64,000 nt of DNA, taken from assembly GCF_000150275.1 (NCBI RefSeq), contig NW_002060946.1, forward strand, positions 5,804,597 to 5,868,596, given 5' to 3'. The translations under genes and the position numbers were made by a program. Under the pieces are notes generated by a model. It searched no databases and had not been told where the DNA came from. It was given only the letters and a program-made list of their open reading frames with translations. Shown in pieces: positions 5,609 to 64,000 of this stretch. This DNA is from Trichoplax adhaerens (lineage: Eukaryota > Animalia > Placozoa). Positions within the stretch are counted from its first letter, which is position 1, and every line of letters begins with the position of its first letter.

Positions 5609-6605
5609 ATGAGTCAGGAAAATTCATTAATAAACGGAGAAAATTTTACTGAAGTGGATTATTTAAATGGTGAGGATAACGATGACGATAAACAAAATAA
5701 CTACAAATTGAGATCGCGCGGCCATGAAGGTAAAAGAAAAACTGATTTACAAGAAGACAGATTAAGTGATATTAGTGATAAAGAAATGGAAGAAGGATTG
5801 CCAACAACAACTTCAACGGCAACAGCCAATAATGGTAGTAACGATGGCGGTAGTAATGGTAAAAGTAGAGGGAAGAAAAAAGCAGCATCGTCGCGCTCGC
5901 GTGCTCGTCGACTATTAATTAATGAACGGGAACGACAGAGAATGCATAGTTTAAACGCTGCTTTGGATCGTCTAAGATCTGTTGTACCACACTATCCTAG
6001 TGATCGCAAGTTATCCAAAATTGAAACGTTATTATTAGCTCAAAATTATATTGTAGCGCTAACAGAAGCGCTTAATTCTGTTCGTGGTCCTCAACTTGAT
6101 CAACAACAACATCAACAACAAGCGCAACAAGCACAGCAGCAGCCACATCCGTCGCAAGCACAACATCACTATTCCCAACAACATCCAAATCAGAGTGATC
6201 ATATCGCTTTATCGTCAGGTTTAATGATGCAAGGGAATCCACCGCATTCTATGGCTGTTGTCGCTCCAACCTCGACTTTATCCTCATCATCATCATCAGC
6301 AACAACAACAACAATCGATTGCTCATGGCCTCAATTTAGCCGATAACTATAATCAAAGTCCAATTATACATACAAGCACTAGCATGCATAACGCCGTCGC
6401 CAAAGGCAATAATCAAGTTGTGCAAGGATCAGCTGGACTACAGCCGATGTCTAATCAATTAATAAGCCATTCTACAAATGAATTAGTCACAACCGCATCC
6501 AACAATAATGATATCACCTCGGCGCAATGCCATTTACAATCCAATACTGTGGAAAATGAACTATGCTTTAATAACGATGATTTATCACAGTTGCTTAATG
6601 TCTAA
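5609..6605 (+). CDS. Atonal-superfamily bHLH transcription factor (neurogenin/NeuroD/Mist1-dimmed-like)
   Basis: bHLH domain [56 protein letters not shown] followed by a Q/H-rich region. The unspliced ORF ends at 6346 (245 aa). A GT-AG intron 6219-6339 would join it to the frame ending at 6605 (291 aa). The domain call is firm; the 3' end is less certain. Confidence 0.9.
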
Positions 6606-8537
6606 ATTTGATTGGTACTCATGTTGTCATCTTCAATTTTATACGACGCTATAGTATGGTAATTATGGGAGTGGACAGTGTACTTTGTAATCGTAAAAAT
6701 GTTGTGGCAATGCAATCCAGGTTCTTGATACCTCTATGAATATTTTAATTTTACCAATACTCTATCGACCTTAGTGTTTAGCTTAATACAATTATTCATA
6801 ATTATAATATCATGGCCAGGCTATGGTATGTTCTATAGTACATGTTAGTATTTTATGGTAATATTTTCCTGATGCGGAAATAGATATACTATAGTAGTTC
6901 AATAGAAGCTCTTCGACATTGCCATATCTTACAAATAATATCGACAGTCGAGCTCGTAGTATTATACATGTGTTTCATACCTTTGTCGCTTGGAAACGAT
7001 ATGAAGGGAAAGTATTATCTATTCTCATGGAAATAGACAGCTGATTGTATTTTGCATGATTATTTATTTCCTTCTATGCAAGTACAATTTTTTTAACGAT
7101 TCTTACTTCAGTTATACTTCATCGTTCTGTCAACTATGCTTCAATTCATTTTTTTGTATTCAAATCTCGTCGACCACAAGTACGTCGAAGTAATCGTTTT
7201 ATAAAATGGCGGCATTCTACCAAATTTTCTTCTTTTTGGCTAGAATAAGTGCAGTAATGTTGCTGTGTGTTGTATCGCCATTTTTTTGTTTTTAGCCTAT
7301 CAAATCTAGGAATTGATTTCTTCTCTTCCATGGTTGACGTCATAATTATATTATTGGAATGGTCTGTATCGTTTTGTAGCGGAGCTATTAATTTGTACAC
7401 AATTTTGGCTGATCCAATTTCAGCAACTTTCTCTGTTATAAAATACTGGTATGTCAGTTAACATACTACGTATACTACGTTTTCATATTATTGTAAATGT
7501 TTAGCTTGACCTAGCTCGGTGCTACGAATGTAGAGATCACTGTCTACGCGTTTTATTGGAACTTAATTAAGCTTAGTGTTTGTCCTTATCATTCAGTTGT
7601 GATTTCTTAATGGTTTAGTATATCATCACAATTAAGTGTTGGATCTTCTCATTTTTTGTTGATTATACTTGTATAACCTCGCTTTTACTGTAATATTTGA
7701 TAGTATCTGTGCACCGTGCTAGAGTTTTTATACAGTAGCAAATCAATTTCAACATAGTTCAGTAAAGGTTCTTATGAATCAGACAGGCTTTGTGCTTGAA
7801 TACTTGTATTTGGATATGCTTTTACTTGAATAAACAGTCCAAATTTATGGTGTTGCTAAATGAGTAATTTGCAGGCTAACAATTTTGAAATTCAATGACG
7901 GAAGGTACTACGTATGCAATTGATGATATATTGCTGTATCCATTATACAATATCATTTACCTAATTACTCTGACGACCATATTAGTTCTATAGTGACGGC
8001 ACGCTATCTAAGATACTGCAGGATTACATCTACTACCAATTGTCTACAAACATTGAGTATTAACATAACGGATTAGTGCTAAGTAACTAGCATGTAGTCA
8101 GCAATGATTTGATACGTTTACTAACAACGACAAGAACGTTCTTTAAACCATGCAAAAGGAAAATTGTCCTTCAACGAACATTTCAATACATTCGATACAT
8201 AAAAGTATCTATCTACCCGTGTAACTATTCATTCGCATGGCACACTGTATAAGATAATATTAAGGTGAATAAAAGATTAATCTTCTGATAGTAAATTACA
8301 ATTATTGGTATTTGGAATAGTATCTAAAGCTCAGTAAAAACAATTATTGTTCCTCGAAAAATATTGGTAAGAGTCATTCATGTATGTCCTGGTAACGATA
8401 TGATATAATTTACTATTTAAATATATGACCTTTATATCAAATGACTCCCAATTTCTTGTAAGAATCTTACATACAAGGGAACTGTGCATAAAGGTTAGTA
8501 ATGGTGGTCTTTCACTCAGTAGGCTGCAGAAATTAAT

Positions 8538-9760
<1,223 letters not shown>

Positions 9761-11624
9761 GTTTGCTGTAAAGTTTTATTTTCATAGAATAGAATGTAAG
9801 TCAGTTGAAATGATTTTAACATACTGTAGCAATGGAAGGATTAAGGGCATTTAATTTATCGTTATCTCTGTCATGCAAGTCTCCACGTGGGAACGTCGAT
9901 CGATTAAAGTTACTCTAATTGAACCTACTATACAGATAGTCTCGAACTGGGTGTTATTGCAATGGAATTTCAAAATAATTGACACAATTTACAACATATT
10001 ACCTTTTTAACTACGAAATATTGAAAGAGTCAGACGCTTGATACTGCACTAACTAACGTTTGATTGTCTGACTAGGCTTCAAATAAAAATGGATCAACAT
10101 ACGAAGCAGCACGGCACTGCAAACTCGCAACCGTTCCGGTCCGATTGGGAAAATATCTTCAATGCGTAAAGGTATGCAGAAGTAGGACTCGCCAAAGTAA
10201 CCTTCCAGTCAAAATGGATAACCAATCAATAACTAATTATAAGGCAATCACAGTACGACCTAACCTAACTAAGTCCATTCAATTATAACGATTCTACGTA
10301 ATCTGTTTACAAAAAAGTAGAAAGCAACTACTGTCGTTGGTTGTTGTTCAAAGAGTCGAATAGAAGCATGTTCAGCATTGAAATGGTCAACGTCATGCTT
10401 AGTAAGAATTTTAGACTACCTAAGAATACATAATTTGTATTTACGAAGTGATTTTCATAGCTCAACATTGAGTATGATTACCACTCCATTTTGAAATCAT
10501 GGCAAAAATGCAGGATCCATTTGATGAGATTCCATCAAATATAGAGATGGAATAGACTAAGTTATTACAAGTGATGCCAATGTTATTTATTGTGGGAAGA
10601 TTCCAATCATGCATTCCATGGCTGTAAACAATGTTCAGCGGTGAATTGAAACTACTGTATTTGATGGATTCAAATAGAAGATTCCTAGTGAGTGATATCA
10701 ATGCATTGCCGTGTTCACTAGTTTATGGCGAATATAATTACATTAACAATTTGTTATCATTCTCCACTACCGTCCGACTTTCAATAAAGTCAAAGATTGC
10801 CAATCGCCCATGAAATTGAACAGTTCTGACAAGAAAAGGGCAAGTTGATGACTGATTGAGGGCGCTATTGTCAAGTTCCAATTCCACTCTAAACAGTCAA
10901 CCCGTCCATGACAACATTGGATATCAATCCATTGAGAGTGGATGCGCCATGGGTACTCCTGTTGTCAAGATATGAAATGGGACTTGTATAACATGCAGTC
11001 GTTGCAAATTATAGCCTAATAAACGGGCGTTGAAGGAGTAAAGTCTGGACGTGTCAAACGGTAGCAACTAGCTGATTTGCTGAAACAAACTAAGGCATAA
11101 AAATAGTACACTGCGTCTAGCCATCATTTCTATTTGAAAGAGAATCTAGCGTCGTCGAGTAGAATAGTTTTGAAAGGTAGTTCAGTATGTTGTTTATGAA
11201 AAGCTTTGGCCTAATGGTGGTCGATCTATTCCTACCGTAGGCGAGTGGTATCTCTATTCTATCGGTAGAAGCATGAATATCGCATTTGCTATTCCTGCCC
11301 GTGCAACATGATGATCGTTCAAGTATCCAAGTCCGTCAAAAATCGATCGTCTATCTCAGCCATTGACGACGATTGAGATGGACAAAATTAGGCTACAAAC
11401 ACACCAATTTGCTACATCTTGACCATTATCATGACTAGTTAGAGTCCATCTTATAAAATAGATTGTATTTGTGTGGAGAAAAGACTATCCTAGCCAGCTT
11501 ACCTTGTAAAATTGAGGACAAAACTCTACCAACCTCGACAAGATTTCCGTTGGCTTTCGGCAGTTTGGTTTTGTTTTCTAAGCAAGTTTTTCATCTCCAG
11601 GTGTAAGGATTTAATTAATCGACC

Positions 11625-11880
11625 GTACTACAGTACTTTGCTGGGCGCGTCAATAGTACTGTAACCTAGTGTAGCACAGTATGATACTGCGCTTGTGTTT
11701 GAGGTACTATGCTGTACTGTAGACTGGAGTAGAGTACAGGATGGTACAGTACAGAGTCTGCAAAAAGGATTGCTAGTACTGTACACTGTACAGTACAGTA
11801 CTACATACATTAGGACTAGGACTGGACCAGATCGGACTGGGCCAGACCGAACTGGACGGTGCCGAGTCTACTGGTACCGT
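11625..11880. repeat. TACAG/CTGTA-type low-complexity array with GGACT/GGACC pentamers
   Basis: For example gtactgtacactgtacagtacagtact and ggactaggactggaccagatcggactgggccagaccgaactggac. Lies between SKP1 and PGGT1B. Confidence 0.8.
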
Positions 11881-12224
11881 AGCAAAATTTGAAAATATCT
11901 CGACAGTTTTTATTCATATACTGTAGGTCAATTGGATTTCTTTTACTTCTAGCATGGTTTTACCATGAAATCTTGAATGACTTCCTCAATAGACGGTCAT
12001 GTTTATACTATGGATGTTGTATGGCTATGCCATAGCAGTTAGAAATAAAATAGAGGGGTATCTCATCCCAGTTGAAACTTGGAAGAGAAAGGACTTTTCC
12101 CTCCTTAGACTCTTCCTTCCATCTCAATGTCTTCTTAGCATAGTCTAGTCAAGGTTTAGACTAGTCCAGATGTCCACACCGTCCAGACCTTGACAACGAT
12201 GAAGATCTCCCTCCAACCGCAGCC

Positions 12225-12565
12225 TACAGTATATACTGTACAGTACGTACTGTCGACAAAAAGTACTGTACACTGTAAAGCAAAGCACTATTCAGTACTA
12301 ATCCTGTGCACTCATACTGTACAGTACAGTACAGTACAGTACAGTACAGTACTGTACTGTACAGTACTGTACTGTACAGTACACAGGATTAGTACTGGAT
12401 ACTGTACAGCAGTACTTTACAGTGTACAGTGTACAGTGTACAGTACTTTACATCGCCTTGTGATGTTAACAGCCTCTTTCTCTTCAGTCCTTTCATGGAG
12501 TTCAGTATAGTATGACTAGTGTTGTCTACAGTATGAGTAGTAGACTACCGCACAGTACTGTACTG
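12225..12565. repeat. (TACAG)n/(CTGTA)n and (TGTACAG)n palindromic microsatellite array
   Basis: tactgtacagtacagtacagtacagtacagtacagtactgtactgtacagtactgtactgtacagt, immediately upstream of the PGGT1B ATG. Confidence 0.92.
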
Positions 12566-12629
12566 AAAATACATTTGGAGCAAAAGCGCAGCTGCAAGCA
12601 GTCCTGGAAACGTCGCAAATTTCAAGCCC

Positions 12630-15331
<2,702 letters not shown>

Positions 15332-60328: not shown

Positions 60329-60712
60329 AATGCAAGTAAATTGCCCCATATGGAGTGATATAGCCCACTCGAAGTGAATTCTACTGTACTATGGCTTCAT
60401 CGGACTATTCTAGGTCTGGTTCTACGCTACTAGCTCATACAAAGTCTATATAGTGGATTAGTAATGGCGATCGCGTAGGCGTCTAATGATGAATGAAAAA
60501 GCTTCAGACGGACGGGAATGCTGACAGCTGCCAAAGAGCTCAGCTCAAGACTTTGTTGCATTAGAAGGGCTGAAGTTGTTGCAAAGTTTGAGCTGTCGCT
60601 ACTCCAGGATGGAATAAGGAGGTTTGCAAAAGTATCTTTATAAAGGTGTCCTCGATGATGCTTTTAAATTTACACTATTGATGACCTCAGCTAGTATTTG
60701 GAATCAAATAGG

Positions 60713-63700
60713 ATGATGATAACCTCAGCATTTTTATTTCGTCATTTGCGAGTACAAAAAATCCACATTGGGAGTCGATCCATCCGTTATTATTGCAATC
60801 TCGTAATCGATCGCACTGAAGATTACAAGCATGGAAGAGAAAGTATTATCAAGTCGATAAGACCGTACCAGCAAGACTGTATTCAAACGTGCTTGGAGCT
60901 ATTTGCAAATGGTTCGAGATCACAAGTTGTTTCCTTACCTGTCGGTAGTGGAAAAACGGTATGCATATTGGATACCTACTGTATATACAGTACACTGTAT
61001 AGTGGACAGTATCTGTGCCATACGTATCCTTAACTCTAGCAATGAAAATCAACAATTGAACATGATATCCTCTATAATAATAAGTAAAATGAAATAGCAG
61101 TCTTCTTAATTGAAGTTAAGGTTATATTAAATAGGAGCTGTTACGATCTATTCACTAAGCCAATTTTTTTAATTTTTGTGAAGCTAATGTTATAAGCAGT
61201 TCTCGTCTTGGACTACTGTATACGATGATCATGATCATTTTTTGGTAAACATTTACAGGTCATTTTTTCTCATTTAATCGGTCAAGTACCGTCTCCAAAT
61301 GCAACAACTAATAAAGTATTAGTTCTAGCGCACCGAGAAGAGCTCATTGATCAAGCCTATCGCCATTTATGCTCTTCTCTACCTCAAAAGGTTAGTAGAG
61401 TATGATTGCTTTGGTATCTCTCTGCAGTCCAGTGCTTCCAAATACGATCATGATAATGGCTTATTCACGGTGAATACTAGAGCGTAGATATTGAACAAGG
61501 TAAAAGACAGGCATCGCCAGACGCTGATGTGGTAGTGGCTAGTGTTCCTACCCTTGGACGCAAATATAGCTCCAGGATCGAACGATTTGACCCAAATCAG
61601 TTTAAATTAATTGTTATTGACGAGGTGTGCTATATCCTTTAGCCAGAGTTGTCTCTGGAACAGCAATAATGTTACTTTATTACCTATAGTTACGATACAA
61701 GATATATATTCTTTTTGATATATAGGCTCACCATTCTAGCGCGACATCGTATTTGCGAGTGCTGGGTCACTTTAATGCTTTACTCAATGATGAAACGCTC
61801 CCAATCAAGAACAAAGATGGAACGAGATCAGATATCTTGGTTTGGGGATGTACTGGTACACTTCAAAGAAGTGATGGTGTCGGTTTTGGCAATGTCTATG
61901 AACAAGTTTCTTATTCTAGGACTTTGTTTCAAATGTGGGAAGAAAAATGGTGAGGAGTTTTTTCTATATGATGCTACTTTATCCTTTAATTTTGCAATAA
62001 TATCTATAAATTTATTGATTAATTAATATCCATGGTTCTTCACTCCACGGGATTAAAAAAACTCGGAACATAATAATCATTACAGCAGTTGTACAGCCAA
62101 TCCGAATATTTTTAGAATTTTTTCTGCTAAACTATTTTTTAGGCTCGCTCCTATTAACGCTTACTCAATCCACACTGATGCAGATCTATCCAAAGTCGCT
62201 AAAAATCAGTTTGATTTTGTCGTATCTCAACTTGTTAAGCAAATAAATACCCCCGAACGGAATAATACCATTGTTAAAGCATGGTTGAATCATAAAGGTG
62301 CCTAAATTTTTTTGTCTTGGCTGAGATTAGCCGAGATTTAAACGTATGTAGAGTTTACAATTGAACTTTAAACACTTACTGTTTGCCTTATGGTATCTCT
62401 TGTACATTAGATAACTTCAAATCGACATTGGTATTTTCTGCTAATCGGCAGCATGCAAAAGATCTTACTGAGGTAGAAGGAATGATTTTAACTTGCTTCA
62501 CTAATGAAATTTTATACGAGTTTAATGGATCATAGTGGATGTTAATGCTTAGTGCTTATCTTCGCTGCTATTTATATAACATACGTACGACTCTTATATG
62601 TAGGCGTTTCGGTTATCGGGAAAAGAGGCTCATCTAGTGGACGGCCAGACACCTTCAGATGATAGAGCTGAATTAGTAAGCAATTTTAAGGAACAAAAAT
62701 TTCCAGTCATGATAAACTGTGGTAAGAATCGTATCAGCTAAGAAAAGATAATTTAGAATCCGTAATGTATTTTTGATATTATTGCTATATTTATATTAAT
62801 AAAGACATTCATTGTATATTTGATATTTCAGGAGTGTTTACAGAAGGAACTGATATACCTTGCATTGATTGCATAATTCTAGCACGTCCTACGCGAAGTT
62901 CAACACTCTTTCAGCAGGTAGAATGATTTATGTGATGCAGATTTGTTGCTAAGAACCCGTTGAATACCTATTGAAACACTATCGTTGTTACAGATGGTTG
63001 GCCGTGGCCTTCGAACATTTCCTGACAAGGAATACTGCACAGTCTTTGACTGTTTTGATAACTTTTCGGGTTGCGATATAGTAACACTACCTTCTCTAGT
63101 AGGATTGCCGCCAAATTTTAACTGCGAAGGTTTGTCTATAATATCACTGAGGTACATGATTTTGCAACGTAATCATGTCGATCAGGTACCTCAATGTTGG
63201 GATCCCTTAAAGCTTGGTTATTTATTTTTGGAAATTTTTAATGAGCTCTGAGTTTTTCTGATAGGGCAAGATCTCGTAAAAGTTCACCATGAAATGCAGA
63301 GTCTGAGTGAAAATAATACTGATTGCTACCATGCCTCATCCTTAAGTGAAGCTCGCGAAATGTCCAAAGAAAGCGTAATGGGTGAGTGCGTTTAATCGGA
63401 AACATATGCATCCGTAAGTTGTATTGTGTGATGAAAGGTTCTCAGTATCTAATTCAATAATAACTTCAATTAGGTCATTCGATTGACTATCCGACTAACA
63501 GTGAAATTGACCCAGCCATGTGGAATCACACCAATTCTTCTGAACCTAAAATATCACCGATATTATTTGATAATAAAGAGATTAATAAAGTTCATTATAC
63601 GATGTGGCGGAAATTCTACATGCAAATTAGAAAAGATTCTGTTTGGGGTCTATCCCTCAACAAAAACAGCATTTATGTTCTAAAGAATGGGGCAGGTGAC

Positions 63701-63899
63701 ACTAATTCTTTAAAATAGTACTTCTAGTATACAACGATGTAATCTTAAAAAAATTAATTGCGAAATGTATTGCTTAGGAAACTTTGATGTTTTTGTACAT
63801 ATCGTGGACCGGAGCTCGTGTAAATTTTCCGTATTAGCAAATCATGAATCTAGTAGATCTGTGGAAAACTATTATCATGTCATGACAAGTGCCTCTGCG
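60713..63899 (+). CDS. IRC3: Irc3-like mitochondrial SF2 (DExH) helicase, 3' partial
   Basis: 12 exons in the window: [17 protein letters not shown]|[52 protein letters not shown]|AHH, TLVFS, VMINC|[29 protein letters not shown]|[19 protein letters not shown]. The N-terminus is basic and lacks acidic residues. No stop codon before the window ends. Confidence 0.88.
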
Positions 63900-64000
63900 G
63901 TAATACTGTACAACATATATGATTCTGCGGAAGCATTTTAAACAATATTGTGAATTACTGAAATTTGGATTCCACATTCTTAGTCCACCGCATTAAAGTG

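Follow-up and report, generated by a model that had tools for sequence, protein, structure and literature searches.

The 64,000-nucleotide stretch of the Trichoplax adhaerens genome analysed here (the window; G000:C1411:5804597-5868596) carries on its + strand a gene for an Irc3-type superfamily 2 (SF2) helicase, with 16 exons, 15 introns and 695 codons without an internal stop. The segment 60713-63899 comprises exons 1-12 and 11 introns, and 63899 is not the end of the gene: exon 13 is split by the window end, exons 14-16 lie wholly outside, and the TAG stop codon falls at window-equivalent 64603 (G000:C1411:5869199), 603 bases beyond the window. All 15 introns are of the GT-AG type and measure 74-300 bases each. 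Exons have a GC content of 41% and introns of 30%, within a window that varies from 31 to 38%. The first in-frame ATG is at 60713, and an in-frame stop lies just 5' of 60698. The gene is single-copy in a search of the genome assembly (105.6 Mb, 1414 contigs) and sits on a scaffold of 8.16 Mb. The exon model was built by following the reading frame and GT-AG sites, and single exons or the database protein P0207 served as database queries.

Assembled contigs from four sequencing runs, belonging to four studies, contain 15 joints that match the modelled introns exactly, with skipped lengths of 300, 90, 101, 193, 113, 131, 110, 76, 135, 92, 82, 84, 120, 74 and 102 bases. One of the four runs is on record as RNA-Seq, and the other three are guessed to be RNA. 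The run contigs begin 86-148 bases 5' of the helicase ATG, and exon 1 therefore belongs to the message. The gene is real, transcribed and spliced as 16 exons. In the databases the locus appears as the unnamed TRIADDRAFT_55867 (P0207), a protein of 607 amino acids that begins within exon 2 with three invented residues and so is missing leader, Q motif and Walker A loop. At its 3' end (G000:C1411:5869025-5869199) this model runs past the donor site after exon 15 into the intron and omits exon 16. The run contigs back the 695-codon model and not the 607-residue one, which corrects a database entry devoid of the ATP-binding loop and the putative targeting leader. The features of the gene are collected in Table 1.

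Table 1. Exons and flanking features of the Trichoplax Irc3-type helicase gene, in window positions unless marked otherwise
Feature	Position	Strand	Basis or remark
5' untranslated region (minimum extent)	60565..60712	+	run contigs reach upstream to 60565 and 60627
Exon 1, 82 codons: N-terminus resembling a presequence, then Q motif (RPYQ, residue 50) and Walker A (GSGKT)	60713..60958	+	ResIII match over residues 48-82; joint 60958/61259 in three runs; absent from P0207
Exon 2: VIFSHLI and motif Ia region	61259..61390	+	Pfam, frame, run-contig joints
Exon 3: finishes in first half of motif II (LIVIDE)	61481..61624	+	Pfam, frame, run-contig joints
Exon 4: AHH of motif II and motif III GCTGTL (family GCSATL)	61726..61949	+	frame, joints
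Exon 5: linker joining the two RecA-like domains	62143..62297	+	frame, alignment, joints
Exon 6: motif IV region STLVFSA	62411..62472	+	frame, alignment, joints
Exon 7: Helicase_C, first part	62604..62721	+	Pfam, joints
Exon 8: motif V VFTEGTDIP up to Q of motif VI	62832..62917	+	72-83% identity to relatives
Exon 9: motif VI MVGRGLR and first C-terminal block DK.YC.VFDCFD	62994..63129	+	alignment, joints
Exon 10: helical part of C-terminal domain	63265..63381	+	joints, alignment, model
Exon 11: C-terminal domain, poorly conserved loop then beta-sheet module	63474..63695	+	joints, alignment, model
Exon 12: C-terminal domain	63778..63899	+	joints, alignment
Exon 13	63984..64054 (window end cuts at 64000)	+	joints confirmed
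Exon 14: WRSQPATYAQVKLIKRL block	window-equivalent 64175-64257	+	joints, conserved block
Exon 15: LTKGKAAAIM block	window-equivalent 64332-64428	+	joints, conserved block
Exon 16 with stop	window-equivalent 64531-64603	+	joints
Exons 13-16 on the genome	G000:C1411:5868580-5869199	+	

The motor of the encoded protein is intact and comprises motifs Q, I, Ia, II (DEAHH), III, V and VI. Searched exon by exon against Pfam, exons 1-3 correspond to ResIII and exons 7-8 to Helicase_C, and the motor motifs RPYQ, GSGKT, DEAHH, TEGTDIP and QMVGRGLR follow one another in this order. A preliminary description of this DNA had credited the gene with a full set of SF2 motifs bearing Irc3-like signatures and with at least 11 host-style introns. 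Both claims hold: every motif string that it quoted is in frame on the + strand, with GSGKT/VIF bridging exons 1 and 2 and DE/AHH bridging exons 3 and 4, and the 11 introns within 60713-63899 belong to a set of 15, all of them GT-AG and spliced; taken together, these features lie far beyond chance. Motif III (61840-61857) reads GCTGTL. The alanine of the family sequence G-C-S-A-T-L is present in 24 of 24 aligned relatives, and the Trichoplax protein carries S-to-T and A-to-G substitutions at this site. In comparison with the family, TGT in place of SAT reads as a conservative variant.

The N-terminus resembles a mitochondrial presequence, as the preliminary description had suggested. An extension of 49 residues precedes the Q motif, which starts at residue 50; the first 30 residues contain five lysines or arginines, four serines or threonines and no aspartate or glutamate, and the first acidic residue is number 33. 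This composition suggests import into mitochondria. In bacterial relatives the protein starts at the Q motif and its N-terminus is acidic, and most eukaryote relatives have extensions like that of Trichoplax. A member of the same family could still be non-mitochondrial in Trichoplax, for instance a nuclear repair enzyme, and the database models of some eukaryote relatives (Thecamonas and P0015), which are almost devoid of an N-terminal extension, would agree with this. Such a location is improbable given the presequence-like composition, an extension that bacterial relatives lack and most eukaryote relatives share, and the fact that characterised Irc3 members are mitochondrial matrix proteins (PMC4245962).

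The C-terminal domain spans residues 397-695 (299 residues, estimated at ~34 kDa). An alignment of 41 C-terminal domains shows that several Trichoplax blocks are common to the whole family, including the ascomycete members P0257, P0268 and P0256; among them are a block following motif VI, an S..aW block and a helix. The strongest signature is 'WR..PAT..Q...L' followed by 'LTKGQA..LI', which in Trichoplax takes the form WRSQPATYAQVKLIKRL ... LTKGKAAAIM. In animals, protists, ascomycetes and bacteria alike, this signature, the S..aW block and the one following motif VI can be aligned. Identity between the Trichoplax and fungal C-terminal domains is about 20-25%. The Irc3 family has been described as possessing a basic, hydroxylated and acid-free N-terminal targeting peptide, a motor with SF2 motifs Q, I, Ia, II DE(H/A)H, III SAT, IV, V and VI, and a C-terminal domain of 28-36 kDa with five short conserved elements, CI-CV (bioRxiv 10.1101/2022.03.21.485104). 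Several Trichoplax blocks align with ascomycete members and may correspond to some of these elements. The end of exon 16 encodes a short hydrophobic-V-x-P-G-L stretch, weakly similar to the 'V.VGP' tail found in many fungal members.

A structure predicted from the alignment gives the C-terminal domain a mean predicted local distance difference test score (pLDDT) of 77 and is confident except in one loop. In this model a helical part is followed by a five-stranded sheet with a helix and, at the C-terminus, by further helices. Pfam searches of the domain return only sub-threshold chance matches and no family, a Foldseek search of the model against the PDB gives no match at E 0.001, and a wide structural search with VIA-align reaches a best Z of 5.5, which is under the stated noise level. 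The domain has neither a Pfam family nor a convincing structural match. The candidates of the structural search were small DNA-binding folds made of a beta sheet plus helix, namely the ASFV (African swine fever virus) ligase N-domain, AP2/GCC-box, integrase arm and WGR; a match at Z 4.0 paired the last helices with the C-terminal domain of Red-beta. All were dropped as below noise. One of the sub-threshold Pfam matches is that of exon 11 (63476-63694) to the papillomavirus E2 N-terminal domain (PPV_E2_N), at E 1.9e-4 and 21 bits against a cut-off of 27. Intron 9 contains a 33-base segment (63142-63174) that is 97% identical to G000:C1414:11271717-11271749 on the opposite strand and is probably a small dispersed repeat.

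The C-terminal domain also bears on whether the gene is an orthologue of bacterial RadD or of another ResIII helicase. No solved structure matches the family profile better than that of RadD (6jde, E 6.6e-59), and for several exons RadD is also the top NCBIfam model. The alignment, on the other hand, is limited to the motor (profile positions 28-382), and the RadD equivalog model NF053632 (cut-off 720 bits) has no match in the genome at E 0.001, with single exons scoring 13-20 bits. Because the RadD alignment covers the motor only and the equivalog model has no genome match, the gene is not a RadD orthologue. The C-terminal domain instead aligns with those of the Irc3 clade and of its phage and bacterial sisters, and we regard membership of RadD or another ResIII family as very improbable.

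Relatives of the gene were collected in two ways. An exhaustive HMMER search with exon 4 (74 residues) of a library of 1.84 billion representatives, at E up to 0.001, returned 79 representatives. According to name look-up and best-match labelling, 72 of these are closest to sequences of fungi, aphelids, rozellids, choanoflagellates, Capsaspora or apusomonad-like organisms; three are closest to bacterial proteins, and four are unmatched to the labelled set. Only two are of animal type, namely the Oscarella lobularis protein and a sponge-like metagenome protein that bears the IMG name 'ATP-dependent helicase IRC3'. The Trichoplax protein itself was not retrieved by the exon 4 search, and the full-length database protein was recovered through the Oscarella query; exon 4 has no match among PDB sequences. 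In addition, three word-index searches, with the family profile, the Oscarella protein and the Trichoplax protein, each gave the best 120 matches. Many of the matches listed carry the name 'putative ATP-dependent helicase IRC3', and an Erysiphe protein among them is called 'putative mitochondrial ATP-dependent helicase irc3'. The best named relatives among the matches listed are fungal IRC3/irc3 proteins, with E values of about 1e-82 to 1e-92, and Monosiga, Creolimax, Amoebidium, Thecamonas and the sponge Corticium candelabrum are listed as well.

Three trees were built from these relatives, one with FastTree (96 rows) and two with IQ-TREE under a quick LG+C20 model (46 and 55 rows). In all three, Trichoplax, Oscarella and Corticium form a group with support of 96-97. 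This animal group nests in a eukaryote clade (SH-aLRT, the Shimodaira-Hasegawa-like approximate likelihood ratio test, or SH-like support 99) whose other members are choanoflagellates, ichthyosporeans, Capsaspora, Thecamonas and fungi. The clade holds the Erysiphe 'mitochondrial ATP-dependent helicase irc3', Aspergillus, Mixia, and the Mucor and Batrachochytrium proteins named 'IRC3', and ascomycete and basidiomycete irc3 proteins sit among the fungi within it. The phylogeny that the preliminary description had proposed as a check thus places the Trichoplax protein inside the fungal and holozoan Irc3 clade, as sister to homoscleromorph sponges. The topology is roughly that of the species tree. 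Within opisthokonts the gene was passed on vertically, and the simplest reading is vertical descent from an ancestor of opisthokonts and apusomonads.

The same evidence bears on recent horizontal transfer or contamination from a fungus, protist or bacterium. Close relatives do occur in bacteria and phages, and such a source might be suspected on that ground. Against it stand the 15 spliceosomal introns, all removed in transcripts, the host-like composition, the 8.16-Mb scaffold, and a tree of roughly species shape in which the sister sequences come from sponges. The probability of transfer or contamination is negligible in our judgement, in keeping with the preliminary description, which had rejected both; the single-copy state of the gene points the same way.

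Taken with its place in the clade of fungal IRC3/irc3 proteins and the C-terminal blocks common to them, the Trichoplax gene is in good likelihood the T. adhaerens orthologue of the Irc3 family, and the Irc3-type assignment of the preliminary description is borne out to that extent. Several points weigh against this view and the mitochondrial role attached to it. The motif III sequence of Trichoplax is TGT where the family has SAT, targeting is judged by composition only, and the C-terminal domain lacks a Pfam family or a structural match above noise. Furthermore, the link to Saccharomyces cerevisiae Irc3 is drawn through the names that the sources give, the tree and the family description in the literature.

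The family ranges over fungi, aphelids, rozellids, Capsaspora, ichthyosporeans, choanoflagellates and the apusomonad Thecamonas, and the only animal carriers that the searches turned up are Placozoa and Homoscleromorpha. The animal finds comprise Placozoa, two homoscleromorph sponges and one Corticium-like metagenome copy. No cnidarian, ctenophore, other-sponge or bilaterian relative appears in the exhaustive exon 4 search or in the three lists of the best 120 matches, searches that together are not exhaustive. Published work likewise reports no Irc3 homologue in human cells or Caenorhabditis elegans (PMC4245962, PMC2533593, bioRxiv 10.1101/2022.03.21.485104), and mammals are said there to be without it. 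The preliminary description had proposed an ancestral opisthokont gene lost in most animals, and the range from fungi to choanoflagellates, extended by Thecamonas, agrees with this within these limited searches; loss in most animals is likely, though unproven. Among animals, placozoans are not alone in having the gene. Since sponges also keep it, any link to large mitochondrial DNA (mtDNA), which the preliminary description had suggested for placozoans, would not be placozoan-specific. A comparison of intron positions with the sponge was dropped because the Oscarella gene is almost without introns. The Corticium-like copy (L085 and L086:3142-4935, JGI metagenome 3300046527) is intronless, and its neighbours are animal-type genes for TIR, SAM/PARP, ICln and serine carboxypeptidase proteins; it probably represents a homoscleromorph sponge genome inside the metagenome.

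The function of Irc3 has been described in yeast, where the protein resides in the mitochondrial matrix (PMC4245962, PMC4872236). There it is a nuclear-encoded motor of the DEAH type that travels along double-stranded DNA, reverses forks and moves Holliday junctions, which keeps the replication and repair of mtDNA that depend on recombination in order. Purified Irc3 from two yeasts is a double-stranded DNA-dependent ATPase that unwinds only branched DNA, and irc3 deletion is partly rescued by Escherichia coli RecG (PMC4245962, PMC4872236, bioRxiv 10.1101/2022.03.21.485104). By homology with these enzymes, a corresponding role may be sketched for the Trichoplax protein. Its first 30-45 residues would act as a cleavable presequence directing import into the mitochondrial matrix, where the motor would hydrolyse ATP while translocating on double-stranded DNA. 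The C-terminal domain may grip the branch point, a role put forward for its counterpart in yeast Irc3. Fork reversal and Holliday junction migration by such an enzyme would lead to fewer breaks and fewer irregular branched mtDNA molecules. Together with Mgm101, the helicase could support recombination-linked maintenance of placozoan mtDNA. Import, substrate and role are thus proposed by analogy with the yeast protein and from the composition of the N-terminus.

A different function, in which the family member acts on mitochondrial RNA or translation and not on branched DNA, would run counter to this proposal. A preprint reports a role of yeast IRC3 in the regulation of mitochondrial translation (bioRxiv 10.1101/2021.04.01.438031), and according to a review mtDNA loss can follow secondarily from defects in gene expression (PMC11122041). 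Three observations make a translation role improbable: the double-stranded DNA-dependent ATPase and the unwinding of branched DNA only that the purified enzymes of two yeasts show, with partial rescue of the deletion by RecG; the identity of the nearest solved relative, the DNA repair helicase RadD; and the position of a phage-like sister gene, described below, within a module for DNA replication and recombination. The remodelling of branched mtDNA by the Trichoplax helicase therefore remains our preferred proposal.

The company that the gene keeps in the genome is consistent with this proposal. A Trichoplax Mgm101 gene with four exons (G000:C1411:4288664-4290786; Pfam PF06420, positions 3-170) lies on the same scaffold, 1.5 Mb upstream, and Mgm101 has been reported from Trichoplax before (PMC3572067). 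Its co-retention fits a retained recombination toolkit. A search of the genome with the Ydc2/Cce1 family profile gave no match, and as the controls were matchless too, it is uninformative.

Unexpectedly, helicases of phages and bacteria are the closest relatives outside eukaryotes. The family profile finds full-length relatives with 33-45% identity in bacterial metagenome-assembled genomes (MAGs; Desulfobacterota-like, Acidobacteriota, Armatimonadota and Spirochaetota) and further relatives in more than 550 viral contigs. The bacterial proteins L004, L007, L008 and L011-L014 have ~550-580 residues and combine the motor with the 'WR..PAT..Q ... LTKGQA' signature found in eukaryote Irc3, without a leader. 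The pair P0222 and P0227 branches in the trees as sister to the eukaryote clade (support 98-99), and the next branch outward is a group of viral contigs. P0227 is encoded on the ENA contig k141_1413946 (L087; region 6001-13022), a phage-like sequence of 99.7 kb with small same-strand genes. Two genes downstream of the helicase gene lies that of a Toprim-DnaB_C, gp4/Twinkle-like primase/helicase (phrog_239), and nearby is one for a RusA-like Holliday junction resolvase. Other viral copies stand in non-replicative contexts, which tempers a phage-origin reading. In the viral contigs closest by identity (L089:18-7361 and L096:313-7954, IMG/VR), the helicase lies between a protein of ~850-880 residues without Pfam domains and a subtilase (Peptidase_S8); a replication module around it was rejected, the neighbours being a subtilase and proteins of unknown function.

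The position of the phage-like sister and of the viral group hints at a phage origin of the Irc3 lineage, with the root and the direction of transfer unsettled. A phage origin is accepted for other mitochondrial replication proteins. A fuller scenario is that the lineage stems from a phage replication and recombination helicase that was recruited to the mtDNA machinery before the opisthokont/apusomonad split and was kept, so far as is seen, by placozoans and homoscleromorphs as the sole animals; we regard it as tentative and rather unlikely. If true, and with Mgm101 also kept in Trichoplax, it would imply recombination-dependent mtDNA maintenance in placozoans and homoscleromorphs.

The literature treats Irc3 as a yeast protein without a human homologue, and even as a possible antifungal target. 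An animal member is new to this known family: its sequence is already in databases, unnamed and mis-modelled, and no paper in the library searched was found to connect Irc3 to animals, Trichoplax or choanoflagellates. The family is thereby older and wider than described, covering opisthokonts and an apusomonad and reaching animals, in which it seemingly survives only in placozoans and homoscleromorph sponges. Animal evolution thereby offers a dated and testable example of the loss of a mitochondrial recombination helper, beside Mgm101. MSH1 is a further such case. The gene also offers an animal system in which to ask whether branched-DNA remodelling still maintains mtDNA.

Four known systems resemble the Trichoplax gene to different degrees. 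Irc3 of S. cerevisiae and Ogataea polymorpha shares with it a basic, acid-free leader, a DEAH-type SF2 motor and a C-terminal domain of ~30 kDa with short blocks; the Trichoplax gene differs in being an animal gene with 15 introns and motif III TGT, and the likeness to yeast is by description and clade names. E. coli RadD (YejH, 6jde), a DNA repair protein, has the same ResIII and Helicase_C arrangement and is the closest solved motor, but the match stops at motif VI and the C-terminal domains are unrelated by sequence. Helicases of the PHROG 16 type (the viral L089-L096, P0222/P0227 and MAG L004-L014) are 35-45% identical to eukaryote members over the motor and are the nearest outgroups, while they have no N-terminal leader, a C-terminal domain of ~210-240 residues and phage or prophage gene contexts. 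Mgm101 is an unrelated Rad52-like annealing protein with a wider published animal range (Amphimedon, Acropora) than that of Irc3 here. It nevertheless provides the precedent, as a yeast-type mtDNA recombination protein that bilaterians lack but Trichoplax, sponges and corals have kept (PMC3572067).

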